Sequence record: OZ195934.1
DNA: 64,000 bases
Reading direction: 5' to 3' (one strand)
Below are positions 35,033 to 61,923 of this stretch, one piece after another (position 1 is the stretch's first letter; the number at the start of each line of letters is the position of its first letter). A model generated the notes under the pieces. It ran no database searches. It saw nothing but the letters and a program-made list of their open reading frames with translations, and was not told where the DNA came from. The position numbers and the translations under genes are program-made.

Positions 35033-35033
35033 C

Positions 35034-35675: not shown

Positions 35676-35771
35676 AGTGTTACCAGTTTAGTGTTGTTCA
35701 TAAGCTAATTATACGCGCCAATCACCATATTCTAAACAAGTAGCGATTTAGGTTCCTATTCTCTAATACTT

Positions 35772-35840
35772 CTAATATCACTAACTTCACTAAAACTACT
35801 AATACTACTAAGATGATGCGGAATTTTTCCGCCTCGTCCA
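35772..35840. repeat. Copy 1 of a 69-bp long-range inverted repeat (9-bp CTAA iterons plus hairpin)
   Basis: 66/69 identical to reverse complement of 61717-61785. Confidence 0.9.
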
Positions 35841-35890
35841 ATCCTGCCGCTGACGCTCAGACCTAAAAAAGCCCCTGACGGGGCTCTTGA

Positions 35891-36421
35891 TTAAACTATC
35901 GGGCTTATAACAACTTCTTTGCCATCTATCTTGTGTATCATTTCAAAGTAAGCGTATTCAAACTCAACGTCACATGTTACGACTTCAACATCACCTGCTT
36001 CTGTATAGTTCCATTCAACTTGACTTAATGACTTAGGGAACGCATTGATAAAACGATACGTTGCTACAATCTTGTCTTTGTTGTTGTCTAGAATATGAAG
36101 CAGAAGCGTTGATGGAACTTTACCATCGGGATTACTTGGTCCATTCGGATTGTTCATCGTTAACATCCAACGATATAGCTCTGCGTATGTCTTGAGATCT
36201 TCATCGACTAGAAACTGAATCGATAGCGAGTCGTAACTTGTTGCAGACCCTGCAATGTTGTTGTCAGCTAGTTTCGCGTATTTTGGACCTCTTGCGATAC
36301 TAGCAACTTCCATATTGACACCTGGGATAGCGGCAGATTGAATCTGCCACACGAACGTTTCAGTTGCGTTATTATCTGGTATGTCGATTCGGAAGTTATT
36401 CTTCATCGTTACGTTTTTCAT
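35891..36421 (-). CDS. gp3: Tail tube terminator / tail completion protein
   Basis: QSAAIPG, FLVDEDLKTY.ELY.WM, LHILDNNK. Confidence 0.85.
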   Translation of the reverse strand: MKNVTMKNNFRIDIPDNNATETFVWQIQSAAIPGVNMEVASIARGPKYAKLADNNIAGSATSYDSLSIQFLVDEDLKTYAELYRWMLTMNNPNGPSNPDGKVPSTLLLHILDNNKDKIVATYRFINAFPKSLSQVEWNYTEAGDVEVVTCDVEFEYAYFEMIHKIDGKEVVISPIV

Positions 36422-38388
36422 TACTGCGATACCCTCTGTGTAGTTCCGTTGTGTTTAGCACCACCACCAGAAACTAATGGACTTGCAAAGTTCGTTGTTT
36501 TTTGCTGCACTGAACTCACTGCTTGATTGACGATGTTGTTACCAACCGATGCTGCGTTTCTAGCAGCTTCTGCCGCTGCTTTCTGCACTGCAAGGGCTTC
36601 TAGTATCACTGCATTAGAAACCGTCTTAGCGCCCGCTACACCCTCTGTAATCATACGCTGTCTTTCAGCTTCAATTGCTGCTTGTTCAGCCATTTGCTTC
36701 TTCTCAAGTTCCATTGACAAGAAGTTGTCTAGACCTTCCGCTGAAGCTGCTAGTCCGTCAACTGGTTTAGAAAGTGTGTTACCAATGCTCTTGGCACTTT
36801 CAACAACGACTTGTCCCGCTGCTTTTGCACCATCGACTACAGCACTACCCATTTTCCCGATATAATCAGTCTCGTAGTTTGCGTTCAATCGTTCTTTGAT
36901 TGCTGCGCTTTCGCCATCTAAGTTTTCGCGTTTAGCTGTCAACTTGTCTTTGGCTAATGAATCTGGTCTATCGATTCCCGGTATCCAGTCAATCATTTCA
37001 GCAGCCATTTCTTGAACACTTAGCATCATTCGTTCGATTGCGTTCATCAGCAACGCGAATGAATCAGGAATGCTCATGAAACTCGCGATGATCTTGTTCA
37101 AGTTGTTGACAAACATGTTGAACGTGCTCTTAACAAACCCGACTACTTTATCAAACGCGCCGACGATTCCTTCGACTGCTCCCTCTGGAACTGCGTCTTT
37201 GATGTTGTCGCCAACTAATCCGAACCATGCACCGATTCCGTGTATAACGTCGCTGAACCATTGAGATACTAATCCGAATAGCAATTGTCGTTTCTCTGGG
37301 TCCATGAATATAGATTTCAATGCACCGAAAATGCGATCAATCTCTTCTTCGAAGATCTTATAGATACCGTAACCTGCAACAAGACCGACTAGTGCAACTG
37401 GGTTCAATAGAACTGCAATCACGCGTCCAAGCCCGAAGAATATCTGTCTCGCGACTGACTTCATCATTGTCTTAGCTACTTCACCAAATCCCTGCTCGGC
37501 TAAGATTTTAATCATCTTACCACTGCCGCCAGTCAATTTACCAAATCCTGATAGAGCCATTGCAGCGAGTTGTCCTAGTTTGCCGAACTTCGTAGCAGTC
37601 GCAGCCGCAGTTCCCATCGCACTACTGAAAGTCACGATTTGACCGCCAAGCATCATCAAGCCAACGCCGACGATTCTGAACAACTTAGCAATCCATCCAA
37701 GCTGACGACCAGTTAGGTGATTCGCAATACGTTTTAGATCACTTGCTTGATTGCGCTGAACTTTCATGTTCGCTTTATAGCGATGCAATTCAGTTTTACG
37801 GTCACGCGTACGCGAAACTGTTTCATATGCGAAGATCTTCTGATACAATGCGCTTATAAAGCCCACAGTGAGCGGTGAGTTATTACCCCGACCCGATGTT
37901 AGGAAACTATTCAAATCGTCGGCAGTCGTCTTCTGAAGCCCGATTATGCGCTTCATATCGTTCACTCTGAAGATTAGACGCTCGAACCAACGAGTGAATC
38001 CCTCTTGCATACGCATGAATCCGAGTTTAGCCGTCACTTTCATTTCTTGAATGCCGCGATCAATGCGCGACAAATGACCTTTAAAGTCGAGTGTCGTTTT
38101 GATCACATCGGTCAGTGAAATGATCGACGCTCGTAGTTTATTTGATCCTTCTTGGAAGTTCTCGCCAATTCGCTGAAACAGTGATTTTTGCTGAATCGTT
38201 TGCTTTTCATTGACTTTGAAAACAGACTTCATCGTGTCGAGCAATGACGTGGTGCTCACGTCTATATTGGCGACGTGACGAGCCACACGCTGCATCGTGT
38301 AGACTTCTGGTCTGTCTTCTTGTTGTAAAATCACATGATCTAATCGGTTGATTATCTCTTGTAATTTTTTGTTATTATCAGCCGACAT
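36421..38388 (-). CDS. gp29: Tape-measure / baseplate hub gp29-like protein
   Basis: 655-aa helical protein with central hydrophobic segments; position next to gp26/51. Confidence 0.6.
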   Translation of the reverse strand: MSADNNKKLQEIINRLDHVILQQEDRPEVYTMQRVARHVANIDVSTTSLLDTMKSVFKVNEKQTIQQKSLFQRIGENFQEGSNKLRASIISLTDVIKTTLDFKGHLSRIDRGIQEMKVTAKLGFMRMQEGFTRWFERLIFRVNDMKRIIGLQKTTADDLNSFLTSGRGNNSPLTVGFISALYQKIFAYETVSRTRDRKTELHRYKANMKVQRNQASDLKRIANHLTGRQLGWIAKLFRIVGVGLMMLGGQIVTFSSAMGTAAATATKFGKLGQLAAMALSGFGKLTGGSGKMIKILAEQGFGEVAKTMMKSVARQIFFGLGRVIAVLLNPVALVGLVAGYGIYKIFEEEIDRIFGALKSIFMDPEKRQLLFGLVSQWFSDVIHGIGAWFGLVGDNIKDAVPEGAVEGIVGAFDKVVGFVKSTFNMFVNNLNKIIASFMSIPDSFALLMNAIERMMLSVQEMAAEMIDWIPGIDRPDSLAKDKLTAKRENLDGESAAIKERLNANYETDYIGKMGSAVVDGAKAAGQVVVESAKSIGNTLSKPVDGLAASAEGLDNFLSMELEKKQMAEQAAIEAERQRMITEGVAGAKTVSNAVILEALAVQKAAAEAARNAASVGNNIVNQAVSSVQQKTTNFASPLVSGGGAKHNGTTQRVSQ

Positions 38389-38555
38389 TATTGTGCTTCC
38401 TTATTCTTTTCTTGAATATAATGAATTAGCTGTGCGGCGTAGATATCACGCTCGAATAGAACCATCGTTTCAACGTCATGAAGAGAGAAATTGCCATGAG
38501 TGATCATGGCAAAGTTTTCTTTGTAATACTCTTCAAGTGAGTATCCACCGAGCAT
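38388..38555 (-). CDS. gp51: Baseplate hub assembly gp51-like protein (55 aa, absent from ORF track)
   Basis: MLGGYSLEEYYKENFAMITHGNFSLHDVETMVLFERDIY. Confidence 0.7.
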   Translation of the reverse strand: MLGGYSLEEYYKENFAMITHGNFSLHDVETMVLFERDIYAAQLIHYIQEKNKEAQ

Positions 38556-39409
38556 TAGACGAAAAAATCTTCGATTCCTCGTAGTGTTACCTTTTCGCTG
38601 TTACCACACTTAGGGCAAACAACATCAATATGAGTAGTCAGACGCGGAACAGAATCGACGAATGTTTGAACTTTCGTGAATGTGTTTGTGTCAATCTCAC
38701 CCATGATATTGATTAGCATGTTTTGTTGTTCAAGTTCTTCTTTGGTGTATACAACTTCGCCCACGTGAACTTCGTGAATCGATGCTACAGCGATATTGAA
38801 TAAACCCTCAGGTGTATTCGGATCGTTGTTCTCGTATACTTTAATGTTCGGGTGTTTCAGCTTGATTACAACGTTGTCGTTCACTTTAACCGTGTCATCG
38901 CCTTTGAACTTCGGTACGTGCGCTTGATTCAAATCAATGTGCGCGTGAATCTGCGTGCCGCATAGCTCTTTATCGGGCGCGAACACAGCTTCGATTGCTT
39001 CGTCGTCAGACTGATTCACGATTTCTGCGAACAGTTCATCGGCAGACTTCGCAAGCTCTGCTTCTTCTTCTGCGCTGATCTCTGCTAGTTCTTCTTCAGT
39101 TTTCGTTCCTTCTGCACAACAGTTATATGTTGCTTGGATGTTTGTCACACCGTTGCTGTTCATATACATGTGCATGAATAGAAATTCACCATCACCGACT
39201 GTCAGTTCTTCCATTTTGATGTCAGACATGATGCAATTTTCAAGTGCTTGCTCGATTGCGTCAACTTTCTGATCTGACTCGTTCGCGATTAGCAACGCTT
39301 TGTGCTCTTTTGCAAGCATAGCGCGAAGCTTAATCTCTTCACCCGTCGATGGTAGTTTAACTGTGTATTGTGGTGCTGCCAGTACGTTTAAATCAAATGT
39401 TTTAGTCAT
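38555..39409 (-). CDS. gp26: Baseplate hub assembly protein
   Basis: LPSTGEEIKLR...KEHKALL, CPKCG...LRGIEDFF. Confidence 0.85.
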   Translation of the reverse strand: MTKTFDLNVLAAPQYTVKLPSTGEEIKLRAMLAKEHKALLIANESDQKVDAIEQALENCIMSDIKMEELTVGDGEFLFMHMYMNSNGVTNIQATYNCCAEGTKTEEELAEISAEEEAELAKSADELFAEIVNQSDDEAIEAVFAPDKELCGTQIHAHIDLNQAHVPKFKGDDTVKVNDNVVIKLKHPNIKVYENNDPNTPEGLFNIAVASIHEVHVGEVVYTKEELEQQNMLINIMGEIDTNTFTKVQTFVDSVPRLTTHIDVVCPKCGNSEKVTLRGIEDFFV

Positions 39410-39418
39410 GATATTACC

Positions 39419-40159
39419 TTAAAAAAGACCCGTGATTGCTTCTGAGCCCGTATTGTAAATGCTGTTATATGTCTTCTCGAATTCTTGCGAAATCTCTAGT
39501 TGACTTGAAATCTCGTTTTTAATATCTTCGGACAAGTATGTTGCGCTCTCGTACACAAATTCAACTTCGAATTCAGCGATTGCGTTGTTGTTTTCGTAGC
39601 CTAACTGAACGCCACCAACACGCGTCGGGAATGCATTCTTCAAACTAGTCATAGTAACCATGTTCGAGTTGCGGTCATACGTGTAGATTTCAATTGTACG
39701 AGCATAGTTCGCCATGAATCCTACCTGTGCAGTCGCGCTAGTGTAAATCTGTTTGAACCAGCCAAGCATCATTTTACGCTCTGGGTGAGTCGGTGACAGA
39801 TACATTGTCATGGTCACTGTTTCGTCAGTTTTCGATTTGACTATGTGATTTGGCGTGCGTCGAGTCTTATCGACATCAGTTTCGTACGATGACCCCGGGA
39901 TGTTAGTCGATTTCACCATCATTCCGATGTTGCGTTCGTACTCAAACCCCGCGCCGAACAGTTCAATCGTAGACATGAACGCATCTTGAACGCCAACGCC
40001 CTTGACTGAATCAGTCGCAGCGTTGTACATAGTTTCGCCCGTGTTCATAACTTGTTTCGCTGTGTCTTGCAGCGATGCGAAACGCACCGCGTACAAGTTT
40101 TGACGAGCCAAGTCGTTCTTGGTGATTTGCGCCAAGAACTTCTTAACGTCAATGCTCAT
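39419..40159 (-). CDS. gp54: Baseplate-tail tube initiator
   Basis: DLARQNLY, AFPT.V..VQL..ENNN, FEVEF.Y. Confidence 0.75.
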   Translation of the reverse strand: MSIDVKKFLAQITKNDLARQNLYAVRFASLQDTAKQVMNTGETMYNAATDSVKGVGVQDAFMSTIELFGAGFEYERNIGMMVKSTNIPGSSYETDVDKTRRTPNHIVKSKTDETVTMTMYLSPTHPERKMMLGWFKQIYTSATAQVGFMANYARTIEIYTYDRNSNMVTMTSLKNAFPTRVGGVQLGYENNNAIAEFEVEFVYESATYLSEDIKNEISSQLEISQEFEKTYNSIYNTGSEAITGLF

Positions 40160-40161
40160 TT

Positions 40162-40758
40162 TTATCTCCCACGTCTATAACGATCATCGTAAGCACGTAC
40201 AGCAGAAATATTACGACCATTTTTAGCAACGAATTGCTGTAGAGGCATATGAATAACATTGAACCAGTCAGCAGGTTTGACTTCTTCGAGCGAGCCTTTA
40301 ACGCGCTTCAAGATGTACAATTTAACCATGTGTTTACTGAACTTCATGTTCTTCACTCGACCCCAGTCGATAATCAACTTTGTCTTGTTACTTACTGTTT
40401 TCGTGTTCGCGTATCTAAGTATTCTTTCCATGAACTTCTCACGTTCCTTTGGCGGAATGTAGTGTAAGTTCAATCCGAGCATGTATCCCTTGCTAACGCC
40501 TAGACAAACAACGCAAGGGAACTTATCCCAATACGGTAGTTTTGCTTTCGTCTTCGCGTCGTATGCGAATACATACATGTTTCCCTTGTGCGGGACTTGT
40601 ACTTTTTTGCTTCGAATCGCATCATGCACGCGCTTCTTGAACCACGCTATTGATTTGCGCTGATTCTTCGCGACTGGCTGACGACCCATTTCATGCACTT
40701 GTGCTTTGAAACTTTGAAGCAAGCTTTCTTTTTTCTTCGGTGCGCCTGTTTTAGCCAT
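40162..40758 (-). CDS. gp2: DNA end protector
   Basis: FAYDAKTKAKLPYWDKFP, GLNLHYIPP. Confidence 0.92.
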   Translation of the reverse strand: MAKTGAPKKKESLLQSFKAQVHEMGRQPVAKNQRKSIAWFKKRVHDAIRSKKVQVPHKGNMYVFAYDAKTKAKLPYWDKFPCVVCLGVSKGYMLGLNLHYIPPKEREKFMERILRYANTKTVSNKTKLIIDWGRVKNMKFSKHMVKLYILKRVKGSLEEVKPADWFNVIHMPLQQFVAKNGRNISAVRAYDDRYRRGR

Positions 40759-41213
40759 TAGATTCTAAGTCCTATGAGTTTTCTCAAGCCATGCTCAGTG
40801 AGCACTTTAAACTGCCAGCCTTTTTGCTTCGCGAACTTAATCGCAGCAGCCCATTTATCTTGATTGACTTGAAATGTGTATACCTCGTGAATGAGACGCT
40901 TTTTTGCTTTCTCAGTCAGTCGTTGAGGCTTTTCAGGTGGCTGAGTTTCTTTATGAGGCTTAACCTCGAAGATGAACTCGCGACCATCGCTGAACTTCAC
41001 GTAAAAGTCCATAAAATATCTACGTTTTTTACCGCCATCAGCACTGCTCACGTACGGTATAACGATTTCTTCACTGTTCCAACGAACAACGTCAGGGTTG
41101 TTATCGCACCAACGCATGAAAGATAGCTCCCATGAGCTGCGATATTCTATCTTCTGATAGTTGCCTTTGTACTTTTGTTTGTTCGATGGGACGAATTTTC
41201 CAGAATATGCCAT
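40758..41213 (-). CDS. gp4: Head completion nuclease
   Basis: MAYSGKF.P.N..KYKG, YRSSWE, RYFMDF, EVKP. Confidence 0.92.
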   Translation of the reverse strand: MAYSGKFVPSNKQKYKGNYQKIEYRSSWELSFMRWCDNNPDVVRWNSEEIVIPYVSSADGGKKRRYFMDFYVKFSDGREFIFEVKPHKETQPPEKPQRLTEKAKKRLIHEVYTFQVNQDKWAAAIKFAKQKGWQFKVLTEHGLRKLIGLRI

Positions 41214-41281
41214 AAACGTCTCCTTTCTTATATTTAGTGAACTTCTAAATACGAGTATTACACATGAATAGGAGCCGACAT

Positions 41282-42418
41282 ATGTCTTGGATCGGTCTGA
41301 CAGGAAAACAAACAAATACCGCCGAACGAATCTTATCGATGGAATCGGGACCGTCTGGCGGAGTAACAGAAACTAAAGAAATCACAGACGATGAGAAAGA
41401 TGCCAAAGCTCAGGGAAGTAGCAATGTCGCGCTGACATATCCCGCTAATCTTGGTGCAATGGGCGGTCATCCGAACTTCTTTATGTTTCGAGCATACGAC
41501 ATGGCGAGCACTACAAAGCAGCATTACACTGATATGCGTAGCTCGTTCACGTCAAATCAAAGCGAACGCGAAAGTGCAGATAAAATCCCTCAAGAATTGA
41601 TGGCTACCATCGCACTGTACGCACCGAACGTAGTAGAAGAAGTCTCACACGAGTTTGACAAAACGGCAACGTCTGTTTTCTCAGACTTCTTAGCCGATGC
41701 CGCAGCAGCAGTTGGGGCAGATTCAACGCAAGGTAAAGTTGAAGGGGCAGGCAAAGCGATTCGAACTGGTGTTGGTGCGACACTAGCACAAGCAAAACGC
41801 TCGTTCATTCAGCAGAATGCAGCAGCACAATTGGAGAAGAATAGCTCAGTTGTTACCGATAACGTAACAGTTTCTTCGTACAAGGGTACATCACAGCGTC
41901 AACAGACATTAGTGTATATCTTCCACCCGAAATCACTTGATGAATTGAAAACAGTCGGTCAGATTATTAAGACGTTCTACAGTCTTTCGCTTCCGATTAA
42001 AACGAGTATATCAGGTGATGATGTAGTCGGATATGACTCTACGGGTGCCGATGGCGCAGCGGGTTTTGCTAAGTATGCAACTCTTTTGAAAACACCACCA
42101 GTATGGTTGATTGAAGAAGTTTCAGATTCGAGTGCTGACAGATGGACACCTCGTTTCATTTTCGGTCCCGCGGGTATCACGTCAGTGAAATTGAACAGAA
42201 CACCAGATCAATACTGGCGCACGTTCAGAGGCACAGCAGGTGACCCGTCTGGTATTGAAATGGAAATTACGTTTACTGAACTTATTCCGCTTGATCGCGC
42301 TATGTATCTTCGTGATGTTAATAGTAGCATTAACGGGTATCAAGATAACACGGTCACTGCATCAGGTGATAGTGAAGATAGCGGTAGCTTTATCGACGAT
42401 GTTAAGGGGATTTTCTAA
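41282..42418 (+). CDS. gp48: Baseplate tail tube cap
   Basis: FHPKSLDEL, PP.W, FGPAGITSVK, LTFTE; divergent CTAAATA late promoters 41230-41252. Confidence 0.8.
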   Translation: MSWIGLTGKQTNTAERILSMESGPSGGVTETKEITDDEKDAKAQGSSNVALTYPANLGAMGGHPNFFMFRAYDMASTTKQHYTDMRSSFTSNQSERESADKIPQELMATIALYAPNVVEEVSHEFDKTATSVFSDFLADAAAAVGADSTQGKVEGAGKAIRTGVGATLAQAKRSFIQQNAAAQLEKNSSVVTDNVTVSSYKGTSQRQQTLVYIFHPKSLDELKTVGQIIKTFYSLSLPIKTSISGDDVVGYDSTGADGAAGFAKYATLLKTPPVWLIEEVSDSSADRWTPRFIFGPAGITSVKLNRTPDQYWRTFRGTAGDPSGIEMEITFTELIPLDRAMYLRDVNSSINGYQDNTVTASGDSEDSGSFIDDVKGIF

Positions 42419-42996
42419 TGATTTTTTCAATATTCGATAAAACAGAATATGGTGACGTTGAGACAGCCGATATTTTCAAGAACTTGAATTATTACCACAA
42501 GCAATTGATTGGCTCATTCGATGTCATACAATACACAATTGTCGGCGACTTTCGACCAGAACAGATCGCGTATCGTCTATATGGCGATACGTCGCTGTAT
42601 TGGATGATTCTTCTACTAAACGAACGCGTTGATCCGTTCTATGATTGGGTTCAGCCCAATGAAACAGTCGCGGAAAATGCAGAGTATCGCTATCAGTGGA
42701 TTGGTGGCCACGAGCAAGTGCATCATCATGTAGATGAACAAGGGCGTTTGTGGTACGATATGGTAGAAGACCCCGACAACCCGCGAAACTGGTACAATGA
42801 ATTTGACTTCATCAACAACGCGCCTGAAGAGGGGCAAGAAGATCATCGCGAGATTTTATATCACGGTGTCATGATTCCTGTGTCGGTTGATGAATATGAG
42901 TTCAACACAAATGAAAACTCGCGAGTGATCAACATACTATCGAAAGACGATGTTAGTACGTATGTCAGCTCGTTTATGAAATTAGCAGGGGTATAA
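42418..42996 (+). CDS. gp53: Baseplate wedge subunit
   Basis: RPEQIAYRLYGDTSLYWMILLLN...DPFYDW. Confidence 0.9.
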   Translation: MIFSIFDKTEYGDVETADIFKNLNYYHKQLIGSFDVIQYTIVGDFRPEQIAYRLYGDTSLYWMILLLNERVDPFYDWVQPNETVAENAEYRYQWIGGHEQVHHHVDEQGRLWYDMVEDPDNPRNWYNEFDFINNAPEEGQEDHREILYHGVMIPVSVDEYEFNTNENSRVINILSKDDVSTYVSSFMKLAGV

Positions 42997-42997
42997 C

Positions 42998-44269
42998 ATG
43001 TTTGAAATGCGCTCGGCTAACCCCGTTGAGAACTTCGTGGTTAGCTCAATACAGATTCGAGGCGTAAATTACAGTGCAGGTGTCGAGAACGAGATCACGC
43101 ACTTGGAAATTTACGAATCGCTTGATGGCTTAACGTCAGGGATCTTCATGTTCACTGACACTGCGGGTATCGCAGACACATTACGACCAATGGGATTTGA
43201 AGCGGTTGACATCGAATTCGCGTCTCTCGTCGGGGCGCAAGCACACAAGGTTTATAAAAAGTCGTTTCGTTGTACTGGTATTACTCGTCAGCCATCAAAA
43301 ACTGGTGGCTATGAGACGGTAATGATTCGATTCACGAACAACTTAATCACGATGAATGACTATGTGAAACGCCCGTATGTTTTCAAGAAAACAAGTATCT
43401 CGAATATCATCACGGCAATTCTAGATGGTCTTGGTGATGAAGTACCGGTATATGACATCGAGCAGTCGCTATATCAGCGTGATTTTGTCACGTCGATTAC
43501 AAAGCCGTTCGATACGATCATGAGCTTAGTGGATTATGCGAGTACCGACGTGAATAACTCGTGTAAGTTCAAGTTCTATGAAGATCGCGATGGTCTGAAG
43601 TTCAAATCACTCGGTACGATTCGCGATCAAGATTACGACTTCATCATTCGCAAGGGTGCGAATACGGGCGACGGTAAGTGGACGTCGGGTGAAGGTAACG
43701 CGATTACTGCGCTTCGTGTTGTCGTGAAAGAACAATCAAATATGCACGAAATCAGTAGCGGAATATTCGGCGCACGAACGTACGCACACAGCTTGATTAA
43801 TAAAAAGCTGACGACTAGTGATGTTCGACGTAATGACTATATCGCGAGTGTTGGTATTTTAAATGACACTGCTCACATGTACACGAGCGAAGACGTGTTT
43901 CCTAGTGAAGTTACCGAGTCTGAACAGCCATTGAACAGCATTCAGCTTGTATCACACGACGGGTTTTATGAAAAAGACACGCAACACCCACTAGGGTCAA
44001 CGCATAGCGTGTCTATCATGGAAGAAACGTACATCAGATCTAAGACGATCATCGTTGAAATCCCGGGAAATACGAATATGACTGTAGGTGAAGTCGTTTA
44101 CATGGACTTGCATTCAGTAACGGGTGAGAATCACGCGAGTTTAGACGCGTCAGGTCGATGGGTAATTCAAGAGCTGAAGCACCGCGTTGAACTGAATCAA
44201 TTTATAACGACACTTGAGCTAGTCAGTGATTCATCATTGAACGTAGCAGTGGCGGGGAGTGACACATAA
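42998..44269 (+). CDS. Baseplate hub (gp27-like)
   Basis: Position between 53 and 5; FYED, IPGNTNMTVG, SGRWVI..LKH. Confidence 0.75.
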   Translation: MFEMRSANPVENFVVSSIQIRGVNYSAGVENEITHLEIYESLDGLTSGIFMFTDTAGIADTLRPMGFEAVDIEFASLVGAQAHKVYKKSFRCTGITRQPSKTGGYETVMIRFTNNLITMNDYVKRPYVFKKTSISNIITAILDGLGDEVPVYDIEQSLYQRDFVTSITKPFDTIMSLVDYASTDVNNSCKFKFYEDRDGLKFKSLGTIRDQDYDFIIRKGANTGDGKWTSGEGNAITALRVVVKEQSNMHEISSGIFGARTYAHSLINKKLTTSDVRRNDYIASVGILNDTAHMYTSEDVFPSEVTESEQPLNSIQLVSHDGFYEKDTQHPLGSTHSVSIMEETYIRSKTIIVEIPGNTNMTVGEVVYMDLHSVTGENHASLDASGRWVIQELKHRVELNQFITTLELVSDSSLNVAVAGSDT

Positions 44270-45534: not shown

Positions 45535-46016
45535 TGGCTAGTATTCTTCCGCTTTTGCTAGAAGAAACACCAGAATCGGAGAATGTCGATGTGACGTTCT
45601 CCGCTGTTCTTGAAGAGGGCGAGACTCTTGATAGCATTAGCATAACATCGCACAGAGAAAATAACGGCATAACAGTAGTCGGCGCGAGATTTCACGGTCA
45701 ATACGTCGATTCGTTCGATTTGGGTCCGAGTGGCTTGCAGTATCGCGATACGCGAGATAATAGCTATCACTCAGTGAGTGGCTTTGATGAGCTACCCGAA
45801 AATCCACAAAACGGTCACGTGTATCGATTCGAAGCACCGAGTCCGTTGACGACTGATTATGACTACACAGTAACTTTAAATTACACGTATGAAGACCCAT
45901 TAGTACCGGGAATGCCAGAAGAGTTGGAGATCGTAGAGACGTTTACGCAGACTGTAAAAGGCAAATATGACGCTTGGGGTCAACAATTGCGTGATTACAT
46001 AGCATTGGGGAATTAA
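45534..46016 (+). CDS. gp5.1-like protein
   Basis: Synteny between gp5 and PAAR. Confidence 0.6.
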   Translation: MASILPLLLEETPESENVDVTFSAVLEEGETLDSISITSHRENNGITVVGARFHGQYVDSFDLGPSGLQYRDTRDNSYHSVSGFDELPENPQNGHVYRFEAPSPLTTDYDYTVTLNYTYEDPLVPGMPEELEIVETFTQTVKGKYDAWGQQLRDYIALGN

Positions 46017-46017
46017 T

Positions 46018-46660: not shown

Positions 46661-46715
46661 TTTATTTCCTTTTTAAAAAAGAAGAGCGACTATTTAGCCG
46701 CTCTTGAGTTTTTGA

Positions 46716-47591: not shown

Positions 47592-47723
47592 GTTTTTCTC
47601 TCTTAGTTAATGATGTTTACTTCATTGTTTGTGCGCTTCGTTGCGCTGAGGAGTACATAGTAGGCAAATTCGATGCACCTGTCAACACTTTTTCTATAAA
47701 TAATTAAAAATACGGAGAATAAC

Positions 47724-48143: not shown

Positions 48144-48225
48144 TAGAAGCCCGCCATTTGAGCGGGTTTTTTTGTGCATTAAATATAAGAAACGAATTCT
48201 ACGAGAAATTTATCAAGGGGATAAC

Positions 48226-53678: not shown

Positions 53679-54702
53679 AGTGGCAAAAATTTACAGATCA
53701 ACAATCACAACTGAATATCGAGTGAACAACTTGATGAACTTCTACGATAGCGTCGGTGACGGCGCTGACGAGAATTCAATATATCTCATGTTCGGTCGAA
53801 ATGAGTCATGGTCAGACCGCGAAGATGAAATAAACTTCGCGCCACCTTACCCGAACGATACAACAGACGGCAAAGCTGACGTTTGGGCTCGTTCGCTTGG
53901 TATGATCAAGATTCCAAAGTCGCAGCTACGACCAGTATTGCCGCGCAAAGATTGGGGCGACCCGAATCTAAACAATTCACTGAAATTCACTTTCGGTGAC
54001 ATTGTTACAGTAAACACAATCACGCTGAACGCGCACCCGAGTGCATTGAACGGCTACATGGTTTATCGATGCATTGATATCCCAGAAACAGACGCGAATA
54101 ACTCAAACATTCGCGGTACATGTTCAGTGCCTACAATCACGAACAAAAGCGACTGTGTAGCAGTTGGCGGTACGTGGGATGCACCGAGTTCACCGGGTAA
54201 CCAAGAGAACATTCCTCACGGTACAGGTAACGCGATTGACACAGGTGATGGCTATGTGTGGGAATACATGTACACGATTCCACCGTCAGAAGTTCTAACA
54301 AGTGTTTCGCGTGAATACATCGTATGTCCATTCCCTGACGAAGTGATCGATGATCGCGAAGCGTGGGGATTAGATCAGAACATCATCTTCAATGAAAACT
54401 ACGATGAGACGATCTTCAGCATCGGTGCAGTCAACTTGCGGTTCCGAGCTAAATTAGCAGGCAGTGATTTCATTCACTTGTTCGGGCCCAACAACAACGG
54501 TTATCGTCAGATTACACTTGTTCAGAACCCATTGCTAGTGCGTGAACCCGGTGCGACTGACGACATAAAAGCAACTGAATTGCTGTACAACCCTCACGAA
54601 ATTCAAGAGGGTACAGGTCAGATTATCTACATGGAAAATCGACAGCCAATTCGCAAGACGTTAGACCAAGTAGAAGAGTTCAACCTGATCTACACATTCT
54701 AA
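53671..54702 (+). CDS. gp8: Baseplate wedge subunit
   Basis: PPYPND, VLPRKDWGD, GDGYVWEYMYTIP, YMENR.PI. Confidence 0.93.
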   Translation: MNKVAKIYRSTITTEYRVNNLMNFYDSVGDGADENSIYLMFGRNESWSDREDEINFAPPYPNDTTDGKADVWARSLGMIKIPKSQLRPVLPRKDWGDPNLNNSLKFTFGDIVTVNTITLNAHPSALNGYMVYRCIDIPETDANNSNIRGTCSVPTITNKSDCVAVGGTWDAPSSPGNQENIPHGTGNAIDTGDGYVWEYMYTIPPSEVLTSVSREYIVCPFPDEVIDDREAWGLDQNIIFNENYDETIFSIGAVNLRFRAKLAGSDFIHLFGPNNNGYRQITLVQNPLLVREPGATDDIKATELLYNPHEIQEGTGQIIYMENRQPIRKTLDQVEEFNLIYTF

Positions 54703-54756
54703 TAAATATATAAAACATACATCGGGCTTGATGTCAAGCCCTTTATGGAGATTAAA

Positions 54757-55713
54757 ATGGGAAGAAGTAGACTAGAAACTGGTACTGCGGGTTCAGTTGG
54801 TACAGGTGATACGATTCACAACGGTGGTAATAAGCTGCGCGATAACTCAGACGAGTTTTATCACATTAACGCTGACTTCGAATTGACTGAATCAGGCGAA
54901 CCGTATATTCCAGCCGTGAATGATTCAGCACCGCGTCCACATGCCGGTGGCTACTGGCAGAGAATTCCGCCAAGCTCAACAGCGGGTGGCTCAGGTGGTC
55001 CGAACGCTGCAAACTTGCTTACATCTATTGTAACAGGCGGCAAGTACGATGTCGATACATCATCACTAGGGGGCGGCGCTGTAATGACGCTAAATCTACC
55101 TAAAATCGGCACGAGTGCAGGTCAAGCAAAACGCGGTGAGAAGATTTCATTTCAAAACACAACCTCTACACTAGACACAAATCCACTCGTACTGCGTTCT
55201 AGTGCAGGCGATGCTATTGTAGGCGCAAGCGAGACGAATGGCGATCATACGATTCGCACGAATTACGCTCAGATAACATGCACCGTGATTGATGACGGTA
55301 CAGGCATTGCAGGGACACCACAATGGGGTTTCAAAATTGACCCGATTATCGGTGATTTCGGTGCACCAGTTAATGACACAATTTACACGATTCCGAACAC
55401 AGTGACTCGTTCACTTGCTCTATTCGATGTACTGTCATACGCAGCCGTGAAACTCATGATTTACGCTGAAAATAGCGACCCTGCTCAGGGCGGCATCGTT
55501 ACACGCAGAACAACGTCAGAAATGTTGCTGCTAAATAACATTACAAATGCGTATATTGATGAATACTCAGTAATCAATACGGACAGTGATTTCGGTAACT
55601 TATTGTTAATCGTTCCTCGCGTTGAAGATGGTGTCGTTTATGTTGACATCACATCGAACGACGACAATGTATCAATGGCTATCAAATCAATCGAAACTAT
55701 CAGACTATCGTAA
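54757..55713 (+). CDS. gp9: Baseplate-long fibre connector
   Basis: GTGDTIHNGGNKL N-terminus; synteny. Confidence 0.8.
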   Translation: MGRSRLETGTAGSVGTGDTIHNGGNKLRDNSDEFYHINADFELTESGEPYIPAVNDSAPRPHAGGYWQRIPPSSTAGGSGGPNAANLLTSIVTGGKYDVDTSSLGGGAVMTLNLPKIGTSAGQAKRGEKISFQNTTSTLDTNPLVLRSSAGDAIVGASETNGDHTIRTNYAQITCTVIDDGTGIAGTPQWGFKIDPIIGDFGAPVNDTIYTIPNTVTRSLALFDVLSYAAVKLMIYAENSDPAQGGIVTRRTTSEMLLLNNITNAYIDEYSVINTDSDFGNLLLIVPRVEDGVVYVDITSNDDNVSMAIKSIETIRLS

Positions 55714-55722
55714 GGGACAAAA

Positions 55723-57969
55723 ATGAAACAGACGATCAACGTCGGACAAGTTGTCGATGACGGTACAGGTGACTATCTAAGACAGGGTGGCATCAAAACT
55801 CGTGACAACTTCAACGAAATTTATAGTCATCTAGGCGACGGTAGTACACTTTATGCTGCCGGTGCGTGGCGCAAATGGAGATTTGCTGCTACTTACTTGA
55901 ACGGTGACACTACATACAACGCAGCAAATGCCGAGAACTATTACGACGAAAACGGCGATGGTCAAGGTCCCGAGCTGCACGCTGCATTCGGTGAATCGTG
56001 GACAGTTGATACTACTCTAGGCGCAGTTGATGTGTATCTACCGAGTGGTGTCGAAGAAGCAGACTACGGTAAAGCGATTCGCGTACGCGACGTTAAGGGT
56101 ACGTGGGACAAGCAGCCACTAACTGTATACCCAGACTCAAAAGACTCGATTAAGCGCGTTGCAAGTAGCACAAACCGCGAACTCGGCACAGGCGCTGAGT
56201 TCACAAACGCATATCAAGATTTAGAACTTGTATTCACGCCACCGCGTCACTGGGAATATGTTGCTCAGAAATACGTAAACGGCATGACATTTGGTGATGT
56301 TCCGAGCGTATTGCGTCGTGCATTGCTATCGCGTCAGGGTCAGCGTGATTTCAATATGTCACTTGAACTAGCGGGCGGTGATTACAATGCAACTGCGGTT
56401 GAGATCTATCGTCGCGGTAACTTGATGTACTACGGGAACGAACTGAATGACTTTTCAGATTACGGCTCAATCCCGCTACACACAGTCGAAAGTTGGGAAG
56501 CTTCGCGTTCTGAACCATACTACGTAGGCGATTTAGTTCGTGGTGACGTTGCAGGTTCGCGTGATGACCGCATTTGGCAGTGTATAGAAGAACACAACTC
56601 AATCGGTACATGGGACTCTGACAAATGGGCAGAATTCAGCGATTACCCTGATTACGAAGAGCACGCAGGTAGCACCCCTTATAGCGCGTCAACAGTCGTA
56701 ACGCAAGAACATGACGGGTTCGTGCAGACGTTCGAGTGTCTAATCACGCATACTTCTGCGGCTGGTTACACTGATCTCACGACAGATAACAACTGGAAAC
56801 AGCTTACAAACGATGATCTTGCACCGCTTGACGGGAAGACAATTCGTTTGCGTCTAGCAGCCAATGCAGGTGACCCAATCGCGATGGTAACATACTTGAG
56901 CGATGTGTCAAGCTTCCGTAGCAGCTACATGCTGAAATCGATCAAGCTAATTGACACGAATAACTTCGGTGTTGAGGAATCGACTGGGTCCGTTGTTCGT
57001 AAAGACTTCGTACCTGGGATGACAGTCAAGTTAATTGACTTTGGTCTACCTAGTTACACTCAGTTTAACACTGAGACGCTTGAACTTCTAGTGAATGGTA
57101 CACAATTGACTCGCTCGAATACGGCTGGTCAAGGTGACTCTGATAATGGCGGCGATTACGACTACGACTATAAGCAAGACGCGGAAGGTCTATGGAACAC
57201 GCTTGTATTCAGCGAAGCTCTAGCTGATAGCGATATTGTAACAGTTCGTTGGTACGATAATGTAATCGGCACACTATTATCCTGGGATGAAGGCGAAGAC
57301 AACTTACAAGTTCGCACGCGTGAGTTATTCGTTTCTCGTGATGATTGGGCAGATGTTCGCCGTGTTAACAAACTTGCGTATTCAGACACTGATAATCCGA
57401 GCGCGGCAGTTGCTGAAGTTCTACCTGACTCAGAAACATTCGCACCGGGTGGTACACTGACATCATTGATGGAAAGTATCTTCCCTATTGGCTCGATTTA
57501 CACGAACGCAAATAACCCGAGCAACCCCGCTGATTACATGGGCTTCGGTAAATGGGTTCGTTATGCTGAAGGGCGTACAATCGTTGGTTGGAATAGCGAA
57601 GATGACGGAAGTTTTCACCGCAACAACAACAACGAAAATATCGTTCAAGCGGGTGGTACTGGCGGTGCAATCGGTGTGACTCTTACACAAGAGAACATTC
57701 CAGAGCTGATAAGTACAACAAACGATGATCACGCGAACGACTCTAGTCGCGATATTGGTAACATCACAGAGCAATACAGCTTAGTAGCTCGTGCTGCAAC
57801 GTCTGGCGGTGATATCAACTTGAATGGTTGTTTAGGTGACCCTGAAAACACGACGCCTTTAGCGTACTACGCTGAAGAGCCAATCAAAGTGAATCATGGT
57901 CAAATCGCACAAGCGGTTGATGTAACTCAACCTTACATTACTGCATACACTTGGATAAGGACTGCATAA
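55723..57969 (+). CDS. gp10: Baseplate wedge subunit and tail pin
   Basis: MKQTINVGQVVDDGTGDYLRQGG, FPIGSIY, QPYITAYTWIRTA. Confidence 0.93.
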   Translation: MKQTINVGQVVDDGTGDYLRQGGIKTRDNFNEIYSHLGDGSTLYAAGAWRKWRFAATYLNGDTTYNAANAENYYDENGDGQGPELHAAFGESWTVDTTLGAVDVYLPSGVEEADYGKAIRVRDVKGTWDKQPLTVYPDSKDSIKRVASSTNRELGTGAEFTNAYQDLELVFTPPRHWEYVAQKYVNGMTFGDVPSVLRRALLSRQGQRDFNMSLELAGGDYNATAVEIYRRGNLMYYGNELNDFSDYGSIPLHTVESWEASRSEPYYVGDLVRGDVAGSRDDRIWQCIEEHNSIGTWDSDKWAEFSDYPDYEEHAGSTPYSASTVVTQEHDGFVQTFECLITHTSAAGYTDLTTDNNWKQLTNDDLAPLDGKTIRLRLAANAGDPIAMVTYLSDVSSFRSSYMLKSIKLIDTNNFGVEESTGSVVRKDFVPGMTVKLIDFGLPSYTQFNTETLELLVNGTQLTRSNTAGQGDSDNGGDYDYDYKQDAEGLWNTLVFSEALADSDIVTVRWYDNVIGTLLSWDEGEDNLQVRTRELFVSRDDWADVRRVNKLAYSDTDNPSAAVAEVLPDSETFAPGGTLTSLMESIFPIGSIYTNANNPSNPADYMGFGKWVRYAEGRTIVGWNSEDDGSFHRNNNNENIVQAGGTGGAIGVTLTQENIPELISTTNDDHANDSSRDIGNITEQYSLVARAATSGGDINLNGCLGDPENTTPLAYYAEEPIKVNHGQIAQAVDVTQPYITAYTWIRTA

Positions 57970-58655
57970 TGACAAGTAAAGCAAGACATTCATCAAGAGT
58001 ATGGACGAACGATTCTAGCAAGAAGATCTTCGACCAAGACTCGATTAGCGACGCTGGGCTATATCCCGGCGACCGCTTCAACTTTCGAGGCGCTATTTTA
58101 GGCGACTCGACAGTTGACGAAATTCAAAACGGTGCATGGGATCCCAATGTACAATCGGCATTAATGCAGTTAGCAATGGCTGCGATTTTACCAGTTGGGT
58201 CAGTTCTAATGTCTACTGACGCATCGAACCCGTTTAACACAAACCAGTTCAATGAAACGATTTCGTATACGGGCACATCGCTAGTTGATAACATCAACTT
58301 GTATGGCGTGTCAGTGTCGCTTTCAGTCGGAGACTCAGACAACGACATCGCAGAGAAAGTATTCACTGCAATGCACGCGTCTCAGTTGTTTGACACAGTA
58401 CCGACAGATCACGTACCACCGTCGAACACATTCTTACTGAAGCACCGAAGCTCAAGACCGCATAATACTGCGTACACTTCAACGTACGCTGATATTCTAG
58501 ACTCGAACGGTGATACTACGGGTATACAAGCTAAAAGCGTCGTAACGGGCGAATCAGACGGCGAGACGAGCTTAGGTTATGGGGAATGGGAGCTGTATCA
58601 CACAGATACGACAACATACCCGTCAACAATGTACTTTTATAGAAGGATTGGTTAA
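57969..58655 (+). CDS. gp11: Baseplate wedge / short fibre connector
   Basis: LPVGSV, LGYGEW; synteny. Confidence 0.8.
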   Translation: MTSKARHSSRVWTNDSSKKIFDQDSISDAGLYPGDRFNFRGAILGDSTVDEIQNGAWDPNVQSALMQLAMAAILPVGSVLMSTDASNPFNTNQFNETISYTGTSLVDNINLYGVSVSLSVGDSDNDIAEKVFTAMHASQLFDTVPTDHVPPSNTFLLKHRSSRPHNTAYTSTYADILDSNGDTTGIQAKSVVTGESDGETSLGYGEWELYHTDTTTYPSTMYFYRRIG

Positions 58656-60196
58656 TGTCAGGTACAAACATATTCACGCACGTAAGCGACGAAGCGCAAT
58701 ATGTTTACCTACAGCCGTTCACATCACCGGGCAAGGCGTTCGAGACTGGTGGTGATGTTCAGAGTCTTTTAGAACAGATTCACGTGAACGCTCTTGAGCC
58801 GTTGCCAACTTTACCGTTCGCGACGACCGATGAGCAAGGTTCGGTCGAATACTCAACTCAAGCAGAAGCAAATGCTTTAGATGACGTTTTGACCGTATTG
58901 ACACCACAATCACTTGATGGTGTCAATACACACGTTTCTCCGTCTACGACGACTCAGTTAGGTAACTTACGCGAAGTTCGTACGAGTGATTTGACACGCG
59001 TTACTGCGTCGTCAGATGATACACGATTGATGTCATATCGTCGATTGGATGAAATGACGAGTGTACGAAATGCGTTAGCAGACGATGGTAGCGTCGAGTC
59101 TCAAGGCTTCGCTAGACATTCGACTTTATCAGAAGCACTCGCATACAACCCGACAAATTTCATTTCACCGCAAAAGACGTGGAATTTGATCAAAACCGAA
59201 ATACCAAACCCGTGGACTCAAGCAACTGAAACGGAATCTGGCGTATTACGAACGGTAGGTCAGCGAGACGCACTTAAATCAGATCGCACAATTGCAATCA
59301 CAGTTGGTGGATTGAATCACGTTAACGCTACGACATCGAAACGCGGTGCGTTCAAGATAACTGACAATAATCTAAGTCGTGATGACGAATTCGCAAACGA
59401 GTATGCGATTACACCCGCGACAATTGCAAACTTAATCGGCACAGAAACGCAGTCAGGATTCTTTTCACTACCGACTTCGTTCGCCGATGAATCTAGCGAA
59501 GTAACTAGTGCAGCACGCGGTTTCGAGTTAGGTCAAAAGCTTGGCCCAGATGGCGGTGTGATTACAGGAACATTAAACTGTGACAACATCGTATCGAAGA
59601 TCACGCAATCAGTCAAGAAAACCACGTCTGGTGGCGGTACGTATTACGTAGATGAAACACGCAAGCGCGAATTGTTCCCATCAGATCACATCGACCGTGA
59701 AATTGGATTAGAAGGGCGACCAGTTGGTAGTATATTTCACTGTACTCGCAACGTAGACCCAAACACTCAGTTCGGTGGGGTATGGTATCGCGTACAAGGC
59801 GGGCGTACTATGATCGGTGCAGGTACTGGTAATGATTACGTGAGAAAGCGTAGCTTCAGTGCAGGGTCGCAAGGTGGGAATCGTCGTGAGCGTTTAGCAG
59901 AGAAGCACTTGCCAGTTCACAAACACGCGAGTTGGGGTGAAACGTACTCAACAAAGAACAGCACATGCATAAAGTACGAAGAAGTTCGTAACCCATATGG
60001 TGTTACATATTACTGTAAAGAATATTCAACCGTCAATTACTGGAAGTTCGGTAAAACCGGCTCTAGAAATAACCCGGGAATGGGTAGCACTGACAGCGAC
60101 AACTACATGTACTACAATTCACCAGTGGGCGGCAACGGATATCACGAAAACATGATGCCGTATTACACAGTTTACATTTGGAGACGAGTTAAATGA
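58655..60196 (+). CDS. gp12: Short tail fibre paralogue 1
   Basis: HVSDEAQYV, ATETESG repeats, HxH, PYYTVYIWRRVK. Confidence 0.8.
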   Translation: MSGTNIFTHVSDEAQYVYLQPFTSPGKAFETGGDVQSLLEQIHVNALEPLPTLPFATTDEQGSVEYSTQAEANALDDVLTVLTPQSLDGVNTHVSPSTTTQLGNLREVRTSDLTRVTASSDDTRLMSYRRLDEMTSVRNALADDGSVESQGFARHSTLSEALAYNPTNFISPQKTWNLIKTEIPNPWTQATETESGVLRTVGQRDALKSDRTIAITVGGLNHVNATTSKRGAFKITDNNLSRDDEFANEYAITPATIANLIGTETQSGFFSLPTSFADESSEVTSAARGFELGQKLGPDGGVITGTLNCDNIVSKITQSVKKTTSGGGTYYVDETRKRELFPSDHIDREIGLEGRPVGSIFHCTRNVDPNTQFGGVWYRVQGGRTMIGAGTGNDYVRKRSFSAGSQGGNRRERLAEKHLPVHKHASWGETYSTKNSTCIKYEEVRNPYGVTYYCKEYSTVNYWKFGKTGSRNNPGMGSTDSDNYMYYNSPVGGNGYHENMMPYYTVYIWRRVK

Positions 60197-61617
60197 CACA
60201 AAAAGGCACTCAGATTTTCGACCACGTTTTAGACAATGCGGGTACCGTGACGGTCAACGTTGAAAGTACAGCATTCGATGGATTGACGGGTGGAAATGAT
60301 GATTTACAAACTTGTCTTGAGTTGATCCAAGAACATGCAGTGATGGAGATACCGGACTTCCCAGTCGCGAGTACATCACAGCAAGGGATTACTCAACTGA
60401 GTGATGAAAGTGCAGTTGCTGACGAGACGAATGATTCGTCGGCAGTAACACCATCCGCACTTAATTACTGGTTTGAAAATCACGCAACGGCAACCGAAGT
60501 TCAGTATGGATTCGTGAAGCTGATTAGCAACAATACGATTGACACGGTCGAACCATCAGCGTCTGTAGAAGAAGCTCAGAAACACGCGTTTACGCTTCGC
60601 ACGTTGAACTATGCACTTGACAATCGCTTTTACGCGACTGAAACAGATGCAGGTGCAGTTCGTCTAGCTACAGAAGCGCAAGCAACTACAACTGGTACGC
60701 TTTCAACTACAGTGGCAATGACACCGCAACGCGTTAAGCAAATGCTGGACGTTTGGGCTAATACTACAGCATCAGATGCGAGTGAGTCAACAAAAGGTTT
60801 GATTCGTCTGGCGAATGGAACTGAAGTGAATAGCACATCAGCTTCAGAGAATGACTTAGCGATTTCACCGTATCGTTTCAACGATAGAACAGCAAGCACT
60901 TCGAGAAAGGCGGGTTTCTTTTTAGCAACTCAAGCAATCGCAGATGCGCGTACGTCAAACGAACACGCTGTTACAGTCGGGACACTTTCGTTATTTGATG
61001 CTACATCAACTCGCGTCGGTGTTGCTAAAGTTGCAAACAACTTGACGACAAATGATGCTACTCAAGCACTAAGCGCAGCGATGGGCTTTAAGCTGAACAA
61101 CGAGAAGATCGGTGCACCGGGTGGTACAGTCAACGGGACACTGAACATTAACAACGTTCAGTCTGTGGCGGGCGTTCAGTTGATGCAAAATGGCTTGATT
61201 ACATCGCGTGCGATGTTAAACATGTATCCAGTAGGGGCGATTTACATGAGCGTATCTAGCACTTCTCCCGCTACGCTATTTGGCGGCGGCTGGTCGAGAA
61301 TTGCTAACGGTCGAGTTCTCGTTTCAGAGGGTTCATATGACGGTAAAACGTTCAGTGTCCGATCACAAGGCGGTGAGTATGCAGTTACGCTAACTGAAAG
61401 CACTATGCCAACGCATAAGCACGCAGGTTGGGGCGAACACTATGATGGCAATGGTATCGGATTCGGTGTAGCTAAACAATATGGGCGTAATAACCCAGGG
61501 TCGAAAAAGACCGACAGTGATAACTACTTGTATTACTCAGAGCCAAAAGGTGGTAGTGAAGCTCACCCGAACATTCAGCCGTATTACACGGTTTATATGT
61601 GGGAACGAACTTCTTAA
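60193..61617 (+). CDS. gp12: Short tail fibre paralogue 2
   Basis: ASTSQQGITQL repeats, YPVGAIYMS, HKH, QPYYTVYMWERTS. Confidence 0.85.
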   Translation: MTQKGTQIFDHVLDNAGTVTVNVESTAFDGLTGGNDDLQTCLELIQEHAVMEIPDFPVASTSQQGITQLSDESAVADETNDSSAVTPSALNYWFENHATATEVQYGFVKLISNNTIDTVEPSASVEEAQKHAFTLRTLNYALDNRFYATETDAGAVRLATEAQATTTGTLSTTVAMTPQRVKQMLDVWANTTASDASESTKGLIRLANGTEVNSTSASENDLAISPYRFNDRTASTSRKAGFFLATQAIADARTSNEHAVTVGTLSLFDATSTRVGVAKVANNLTTNDATQALSAAMGFKLNNEKIGAPGGTVNGTLNINNVQSVAGVQLMQNGLITSRAMLNMYPVGAIYMSVSSTSPATLFGGGWSRIANGRVLVSEGSYDGKTFSVRSQGGEYAVTLTESTMPTHKHAGWGEHYDGNGIGFGVAKQYGRNNPGSKKTDSDNYLYYSEPKGGSEAHPNIQPYYTVYMWERTS

Positions 61618-61716
61618 AGACAAGCATAGTATACATTGAAAGTCAATGAAATTAAACGGGTGAGACAAGTTCTTGCCCGTTTTTGTATCTGAAGAATCCA
61701 GAGCGAAGCGAAAGAA

Positions 61717-61785
61717 TGGACGAGGCGGAAAAATTCCGCATCATCTTAGTAGTATTAGGGGTTTTAGTGAAGTTAGGGATATTAG
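61717..61785. repeat. Copy 2 of the 69-bp long-range inverted repeat
   Basis: Follows terminator 61654-61684, precedes TATAAATA at 61795. Confidence 0.9.
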
Positions 61786-61923
61786 TATTATTAGTATAAA
61801 TACCTTGTTTAACTCAGTTCGCTTGACTGCTAAAATAGACGCATAAAGACAATCCCTTCTTGATCCTTTGTATTGCTATAAATAGTAGTAAGCTATGTTC
61901 ATTTACAATACAAGGGAACAAAC

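Follow-up and report, generated by a model that had tools for sequence, protein, structure and literature searches.

In a stretch of 64,000 nucleotides from sequence record OZ195934.1 (the window), two copies of a short repetitive element lie 26 kb apart in opposite orientations, one between gp3 and gene 1 and the other between gp12 and fibritin. The question raised by this arrangement is what such an element does at these two positions. An earlier note on the same stretch described a 69-bp element present twice and suggested an origin of replication of R-loop or iteron type, a regulatory site, or recombination ends able to invert the gp3-gp12 block. The analysis described here places both copies in a family of six, each built of two small hairpins and six units beginning with TTAG. 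As a cis element of KVP40-like phages, this TTAG module is real, strongly conserved and, it appears, not previously described. Among the functions suggested earlier, an origin-like or regulatory protein-binding site is preferred as a possible reading.

Judged by its sequence, the window comes from a KVP40-like Vibrio myophage. Positions 35000-37000 are 100% identical to the oyster and seawater Vibrio phages D491s, 6E35.1a and others, with genomes of about 253 kb, and 75-79% identical to KVP40, nt-1, VH7D and other large T4-like Vibrio myophages. Copies were surveyed across the whole genome of D491s (public record OZ195931.1, ~253 kb). Around the element, the window position equals the OZ195931.1 position minus 185475.

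Six copies at syntenic sites

The inverted pair that gave rise to the question is well founded. Positions 35763-35843 and 61714-61794 are 93% complementary over 81 nt, and because all other inverted pairs found in the window by the repeat search are no longer than 32 nt, at 72-77%, this pair lies far beyond chance. The count of two, on the other hand, had to be given up. The genome-wide search revealed four further copies, bringing the total to six, at about 22.6, 64.6, 109.0, 160.6, 221.3 and 247.2 kb of OZ195931.1, of which the window contains the last two. At least three TTAG motifs at 9-nt spacing are found only at these six loci in the 253-kb genome. All copies are intergenic and, as had been noted for the two in the window, co-oriented with their flanking genes. 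The window copies are mutually inverted because all six follow local transcription and these two sit in divergent gene blocks.

One role suggested for such a pair is recombination between the copies, flipping the 26-kb baseplate block. The arms are suited to this, being 81 bp long, 93% matched, inverted and both intergenic, so that a flip would spare genes. However, the gene 1 / element / gp3 junction is identical in 50 of 50 related records, the canonical junction is spanned by a 3.7-kb contig of another strain, and a contig of 57 kb has the gene-1 copy and, 27 kb further on, the inverted fibritin copy. The assembled contigs, from DNA runs for the window and from KVP40 runs that behave as DNA, break at the repeat; their junctions are canonical, and no transcript ends appear in them. 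In the annotation of the 26-kb block, only genes for tail, baseplate and head completion are listed, and no site-specific recombinase. Moreover, because four further copies lie elsewhere, the window pair is not a dedicated inversion system. The suggested inversion of the gp3-gp12 block is consequently unsupported and must be considered extremely improbable.

The same arrangement recurs in relatives. A search with a 96-nt query returned 51 Vibrio phage records, with 5-6 matches per complete genome. KVP40 and VH7D each have six copies, syntenic with the D491s sites. In all three phages, one copy precedes uvsY, one a glutaredoxin-like gene and one a lipoprotein-like gene; another lies about 1 kb upstream of dam, and the remaining two separate gp3 from gene 1 and gp12 from fibritin. 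The six sites lie mostly outside hyperplastic regions, and three of them are in structural-gene blocks. The layout is also the same, again with six units, in copies from nt-1, F86 and 1.081.O, phages of different genera.

Broader searches delimited the distribution of the element. With tight patterns, IMG/VR, JGI metagenomes and 185,579 prokaryotic genomes yielded it on KVP40-like DNA only. A loose pattern (TTAG at 9-nt spacing) applied to IMG/VR retrieved mainly giant-virus coding repeats and was uninformative. Upstream of gene-1 homologues in 80 viral contigs, phased 4-mer arrays were found in VH7D only. The literature searched on KVP40 and nt-1, to which the KVP40 genome paper did not belong, contains no description of the element.

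Anatomy and conservation of the module

On the strand of the neighbouring genes (the sense strand), the order of parts is the upstream stop codon, a terminator hairpin with a T-run (4-5 of the six copies), a mini-hairpin, a spacer, the main hairpin, the six-unit array and a promoter. Several of these parts had been recognized in the earlier note, and direct reading of both window copies bears them out: CTAA units with a 9-nt period (TTAG on the sense strand), a GCGGAA-TTT-TTCCGC hairpin, and a sense strand nearly free of C over the repeats. The terminator said to precede each window copy was also located, as a G+C hairpin with a T-run upstream of both.

The mini-hairpin has the motif (A)GCGAAGCG, of GCGAAGC type, and its variants GCGTCAGC, GCGTTAGC and GCGCAGC keep the GC-loop-GC shape. 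In metagenome and distant copies it is enlarged to GTGCC-GAA-GGCAC, and this expanded form points to a small hairpin with a purine triloop. The DNA heptamer d(GCGAAGC) is an unusually stable mini-hairpin. A purine-rich spacer of 8-16 nt separates it from the main hairpin, GAGGCGGAA-AAA-TTCCGYCTC, and both hairpins of the module have 3-nt loops. Across 23 copies, 86.5% of the cells in the comparison of hairpin positions are paired. In three copies, namely the gene-1 copies of KVP40 and VH7D and one more copy of VH7D, GCGGAA/TTCCGC is replaced by GCCCAA/TTGGGC. This variant is a compensatory G-C to C-G swap of two adjacent pairs; the other version is retained in sister copies of these genomes.

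After the main hairpin come (TC)ATC and six 9-nt units, for which the consensus is TTAG-T-R-R-W-W. Of 132 units, 129-132 agree in TTAG and 127 have a purine at position 6, and conservation is highest over the first three units. At the five variable positions of the unit, C accounts for 1.1%, compared with 20.7% in the genome; T takes its place, and the share of G is unchanged. A same-strand, outward-directed sigma70-like promoter follows the array in five of the six copies, with a -35 hexamer that overlaps the last unit or begins up to 22 bp beyond it. Four copies match the promoter at 10-11 of 12 positions, the one before fibritin at 9 of 12. The 4-5 copies located between a terminator and an outward promoter occupy the least transcribed spot.

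The copy at 160.6 kb departs from this plan. It has neither terminator nor promoter and forms the entire intercistronic region; the next gene takes AGGAG from the fifth unit and its start codon from the sixth. The 109-kb-type copy of KVP40 comes immediately after a stop codon and has no terminator. One copy, plus a second in KVP40, lies inside an mRNA.

Automatic annotation calls small open reading frames in the module. Record OZ195931.1 lists the "hypothetical proteins" VPHD491S_0400 and VPHD491S_0426 over the element (window 35722-35841 (-) and 61673-61846 (+)); the other four copies carry similar annotations. That the element is a micro-gene for a hydrophobic peptide (MDEAEKFRIILVVLVV...) is nevertheless hardly credible. 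Four of the six D491s copies contain a TTA frame that is open and starts with ATG or TTG, but in most copies of KVP40 and VH7D a start codon is missing or an in-frame stop lies just upstream. One copy is frame-shifted, leucine is always encoded by TTA and never by a synonymous codon, and the hairpin swap alters residues. Coding potential was rejected on the missing starts and the constant TTA. The small proteins annotated over the module are judged to be artefacts and not genes, which serves as a warning for the annotation of these genomes.

The history of the copies can be read from their similarity. Mean core identity is 87% between orthologues, 81% between paralogues within a genome and 80% between non-orthologues of different genomes. 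Because orthologous cores are more alike than paralogues, the six copies are old and were mostly inherited in place. The core identity of 87% between orthologues also exceeds the value of about 78% for neighbouring coding sequence. Signs of exchange between copies were found as well. The 109-kb-type copy of VH7D is 96% identical to the VH7D gene-1 copy and shares its hairpin variant, which is one clear gene-conversion event. The gene-1 copy of Vibrio phage K566 (222571-223166) has a different hairpin haplotype and two TTCG units, within flanks that are 97.6% identical to D491s and the window. This copy was replaced patch-wise, probably again through gene conversion. Gene conversion between dispersed repeats is thus documented in these genomes.

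These exchanges, together with the flanks of the module, bring to mind the terminator-promoter cassettes of T4-like phages, of which the module may be a functionless passenger, spread and homogenised by recombination. Such cassettes, named PeSL and reportedly treated by Arbiol in 2010 as well, are likewise intergenic, consist of a stem-loop followed by an early promoter and a gene, and occur in dispersed copies able to recombine. The published layout, with an A3-4G3-loop-C3T3-4 stem-loop and an early promoter TTGYVH-N17-TAWWAT ahead of a Shine-Dalgarno sequence and start codon (Comeau 2014, PMC4122927), is that of nt-1 and KVP40 and is matched by the flanks of five of the six copies, the 160.6-kb copy being the exception. 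However, the roughly 100-nt insert comprising the mini-hairpin, the hairpin and the six TTAG units is absent from the published description (PMC4122927). The module also differs in standing at six places that are mostly not hyperplastic and in having one copy devoid of stem-loop and promoter. PeSL cassettes are linked to indels and gene swaps in hyperplastic regions, a link that was not seen at the six sites, which are syntenic in D491s, KVP40 and VH7D. Although the matching flanks, the converted VH7D copy and the partly replaced K566 copy speak for a passenger, the copies are old, syntenic across genera and more alike as orthologues than as paralogues. In addition, TTAG is nearly invariant, the core is more conserved than the coding flanks, and dispersed repeats of 80-120 bp are a recombination hazard, so that selection should remove useless ones. 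A passenger without function is therefore quite improbable.

Candidate functions of the module

The mode of action of the module is indicated by two of its properties. Pairing of the main hairpin is kept through the double swap while sister copies keep the other version, which argues for a structure formed in a single strand and not for a sequence-specific duplex site. A further sign of single-strand action is that C is excluded at every variable position on one strand. The presence of six phased motifs suggests binding by an oligomer or cooperative binding. A site acting in duplex DNA, that is, a binding array for a phage or host transcription factor or a nucleoid protein upstream of special early promoters, is an unlikely alternative. 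It would agree with the distance of 0-22 bp between the end of the array and the -35 hexamer of a same-strand promoter in five of the six copies, and short phased repeats typify arrays on which small dimeric regulators bind side by side. However, the distance to the hexamer varies from overlap to 22 bp, the conserved 160.6-kb copy has no promoter, and neither the near-total exclusion of C at five positions nor the compensatory change in the hairpin would be expected of such a site.

The physical properties and positions of the copies are also relevant. Ranked by duplex stability, each array falls within the lowest 0.03-0.18% of the 54-bp windows in the genome, 3.5-4 standard deviations from the mean. 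The six copies are spaced more evenly than expected by chance (smallest gap 25.9 kb, P = 0.009; coefficient of variation, P = 0.006), in a post hoc test on one lineage. One copy is located immediately upstream of the uvsY promoter and another about 1 kb from dam. The T4 record places oriF at the uvsY 5' end and oriA at the dam/56 junction, each firing along the downstream mRNA.

The reading preferred here, held tentatively, is that the module is a strand-specific, origin-like site for unwinding and protein loading. The cis-acting module would act when single-stranded, on the same strand as the neighbouring genes. The 54-bp TTAG array would be the part that melts, aided by negative supercoiling behind the RNA polymerase leaving the adjacent outward early promoter, while the upstream terminator would shield the array from incoming transcription. 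The generation of negative supercoils behind a departing polymerase is known as the twin-domain effect. The opened sense strand would then fold two small hairpins at its 5' side and expose about 54 nt of structure-poor, C-free DNA with six phased TTAG(T)RR motifs. A putative oligomeric or cooperatively binding protein (an initiator, loader or helicase) may bind these motifs. A 5'-to-3' helicase loaded on the sense strand would travel towards the downstream genes, and because it would move that way, the co-orientation of all copies with transcription would be explained. The primase sites are GTT or GCT; the antisense strand of the array is without G and hence offers no such site, and the sense strand has a conserved GTT.

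Taken further, this reading implies that KVP40-like phages mark their replication starts with a shared, sequence-defined module, giving six evenly spaced, one-directional origins. This extension is conceivable but rather doubtful. Each origin would consist of two DNA mini-hairpins and a six-unit single-strand loading pad, and forks would leave along transcription. Unlike the anatomy, conservation, duplex stability and spacing of the copies, the unwinding, the protein loading and any role in replication are what we infer from them.

T4 is the classic model of phage replication, and how most of its origins fire is still unclear. If the origin reading is true, the module would give T4-like phages their first common origin signature, and a protein that reads TTAG(T)RR in single-stranded DNA would have to exist. 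Likeness to oriF, oriG and oriA consists in an A+T-rich, easily melted segment beside a promoter, in several occurrences per genome, and in a direction tied to the downstream mRNA; for oriF, it extends to the position just upstream of uvsY. The differences weigh against the preferred reading. In T4, oriF and oriG consist of a promoter and a downstream unwinding element, with R-loop priming (PMC3016281), whereas here the array lies upstream of the promoter in all five promoter-bearing copies, opposite to these best-studied origins. An R-loop consequently cannot cover the array. This possibility was rejected on the geometry, and the R-loop origin proposed earlier falls with it, since the T4 oriF type does not fit. 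T4 origins also share no sequence motif (PMC3016281), whereas the six module copies share about 100 nt.

Other observations weigh in the same direction. The 160.6-kb copy lacks both terminator and promoter and provides the next gene with its Shine-Dalgarno sequence and start region, for which reason it is certainly transcribed, and the KVP40 109-kb-type copy lacks a terminator too. Co-orientation with genes is equally expected of an RNA element. Many copies have a G-T wobble in the hairpin, which is better suited to RNA than to DNA. The evenness of spacing is a post hoc statistic from a single lineage. Finally, no initiator (Rep) gene was found near the element by a Pfam scan of eight neighbour proteins, which gave only SprT-like, glutaredoxin and weak DUF matches.

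The origin of iteron type raised in the earlier note leads to a comparison with iteron and oriC-type elements, including DnaA-trios and ssDUE. In these systems, too, short phased A+T-rich repeats adjoin a G+C-rich element, and one strand is read in single-stranded form. Iterons are 17-22 bp long and DnaA-trios 3 nt, and binding by the initiator is strand-specific. The units of the module, in contrast, measure 9 nt, and the six phased units themselves form the A+T-rich region. The module has no DnaA boxes and no adjacent Rep gene. The iterons of T4 oriE were tried as an analogue and rejected, being 24-nt coding repeats of the gp5 beta-helix. Beside the oriE annotation (79355), the only evenly spaced repeats are these gp5 repeats (GTTGAAGGTAAT..., T4 79402-79569). 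In our view these are the reported oriE "iterons", which do not have to be sites of protein binding.

The alternative that competes most directly for the same observations is an RNA element, which is possible but on the unlikely side. Two hairpins and six phased UUAG(U)RR motifs would then offer a platform to RNase E or to an RNA-binding protein that is oligomeric or cooperative. Its role would be to control decay, processing or translation of RNA crossing gene blocks, as a post-transcriptional insulator, with the 160.6-kb copy serving as a translational operator. Such a role is consistent with the co-orientation of all six copies with transcription, with the 160.6-kb copy being a whole intercistronic region that includes the Shine-Dalgarno sequence and AUG of the next gene, and with the KVP40 109-kb-type copy adjoining a stop codon without a terminator. 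The hairpin tolerates G-U pairs, and every unit fits the RNase E preference R-N/W-U-U.

Phased UAG triplets are what TRAP and HutP read. Both are ring proteins, TRAP binding 11 repeats with 2-3 nt spacers and HutP 3+3 repeats with 4-nt spacers. The array resembles their targets in having phased UAG-containing motifs in otherwise variable RNA and a repeat number suited to a small oligomer. However, the spacers of the module are 5-6 nt, or 6 nt when counted from UAG to UAG, and in predicted folds no competing terminator or antiterminator overlaps the array. To our knowledge, no TRAP- or HutP-like protein occurs in these phages or in Vibrio. The operators of T4 gp32 and RegA are unstructured, and the 160.6-kb copy alone resembles them in having a structured 5' element followed by unstructured RNA up to the start codon. 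The quoted RegA sites are nearly C-free (PMC3014915), like the array. In five copies, by contrast, a promoter separates the module from the start codon.

Several results stand against an RNA element, beginning with the position of 4-5 of the six copies just after a strong terminator and before the next promoter. Promoter scans found no promoter that drives it. Among the Rfam 15 covariance models, the best matches had E values of at least 2, far below gathering scores. The sense RNA of the array can pair with itself through A-U and G-U in the predicted fold, TTAG arrays are absent from the start regions of the usual RegA targets in this genome, which gives no support to RegA as the binder, and the even genomic spacing lacks an RNA rationale.

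The antisense strand of the array presents the opposite composition, with about 24% C and less than 1% G, and its RNA is predicted to be fully unpaired. This composition would allow it to load host Rho, with six units for six subunits, so that antisense transcription would be stopped and the module would act as a two-way insulator. However, the conserved antisense motif is ACUAA and not the pyrimidine-C dinucleotides read by Rho, and promoter scans of both window copies located no antisense promoter nearby. Such an antisense stop is very unlikely.

Whichever of the unwinding and RNA readings proves correct, the module offers a concrete mutable handle, as 100 nt recur at six syntenic, evenly spaced and co-oriented sites across a large branch of the T4 family. 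Either outcome would be informative, concerning how these phages choose DNA-opening sites or a new layer of protein-RNA control at the borders of gene blocks.

Layout of the window

The features of the two window copies and their neighbouring genes are collected in the table. The promoter of copy 1 is conserved in K566, KVP40 and VH7D.

Table. Positions of the parts of both window copies and of the adjacent genes.
Feature	Window position	Strand	Basis or remark
Gene 1 (dNMP kinase)	35034-35675		
Copy 1, sigma70-like promoter TTTAGA-17-TATAAT towards gene 1	35708..35736	(-)	10/12 matches
Copy 1, six 9-nt units TTAG-T-R-R-W-W, C-free sense	35758..35811	(-)	U1 35803-35811 to U6 35758-35766
Copy 1, hairpin GAGGCGGAA-AAA-TTCCGCATC	35815..35835	(-)	sequence and fold
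Copy 1, mini-hairpin AGCGTCAGCG, variant of AGCGAAGCG (GC-loop-GC)	35848..35857	(-)	copy comparison
Copy 1, terminator-like hairpin and T-run after gp3	35865..35887	(-)	sequence; RNA fold gives 9-bp hairpin then UUUUUU; not listed by the simple scan
gp3	35891-36421	(-)	
gp12-like gene	60193-61617		
Copy 2, terminator-like hairpin and T-run after gp12-like gene	61654..61687	(+)	scan and fold
Copy 2, mini-hairpin AGCGAAGCG	61702..61710	(+)	copy comparison
Copy 2, hairpin GAGGCGGAA-AAA-TTCCGCATC	61722..61742	(+)	sequence, fold, pairing comparison
Copy 2, six 9-nt TTAG units	61746..61799	(+)	sequence, position table, duplex stability
TATAAATA, T4-type late-promoter motif, overlapping last unit of copy 2	61795-61802	(+)	
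Copy 2, weaker sigma70-like site TTAACT-16-TAAAAT with TG, upstream of fibritin (wac)	61809..61836	(+)	9/12 matches
Fibritin (wac) gene	61924-63585		name from record annotation

The gene order of the window is a block of 26 tRNA genes, then gene 1, gp3, and head-completion, baseplate, short tail fibre and fibritin genes. Over positions 1-15100, the offset from OZ195931.1 shifts from 185520 to 185473 and then to 185475; it follows from this change that the window comes from a sibling strain with small indels in its early part.

The tRNA genes occupy positions 25095-32622 (-), all on a single strand, and include three tRNA-Met genes and tRNA-Leu(UAA). Tiny open reading frames overlapping tRNAs in the public record are probably artefacts. 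Between tRNA-Pro and tRNA-Arg, a 42-nt direct repeat with 93% identity is present at 30009-30050 and 30092-30133, 83 nt apart. A protein of 477 amino acids with DUF2828 and DUF7788, annotated as "RNA-binding protein", is encoded at 19198-20646 (-), adjoining a homing endonuclease gene and the tRNA block; no evident link between this protein and the element was found.

Two further kinds of repeat were noted in the window. Inverted terminator-like hairpins (AAAAAACCCGCC...GGCGGGTT) lie 23 kb apart at 24851-24880 and 48146-48175, and this pair is judged to be ordinary terminator similarity and not another copy of the element. The tail-fibre-like genes at 9708-13278 contain a family of 185-nt repeats in five copies with 62-84% identity, along with related repeats of 124-134 nt.

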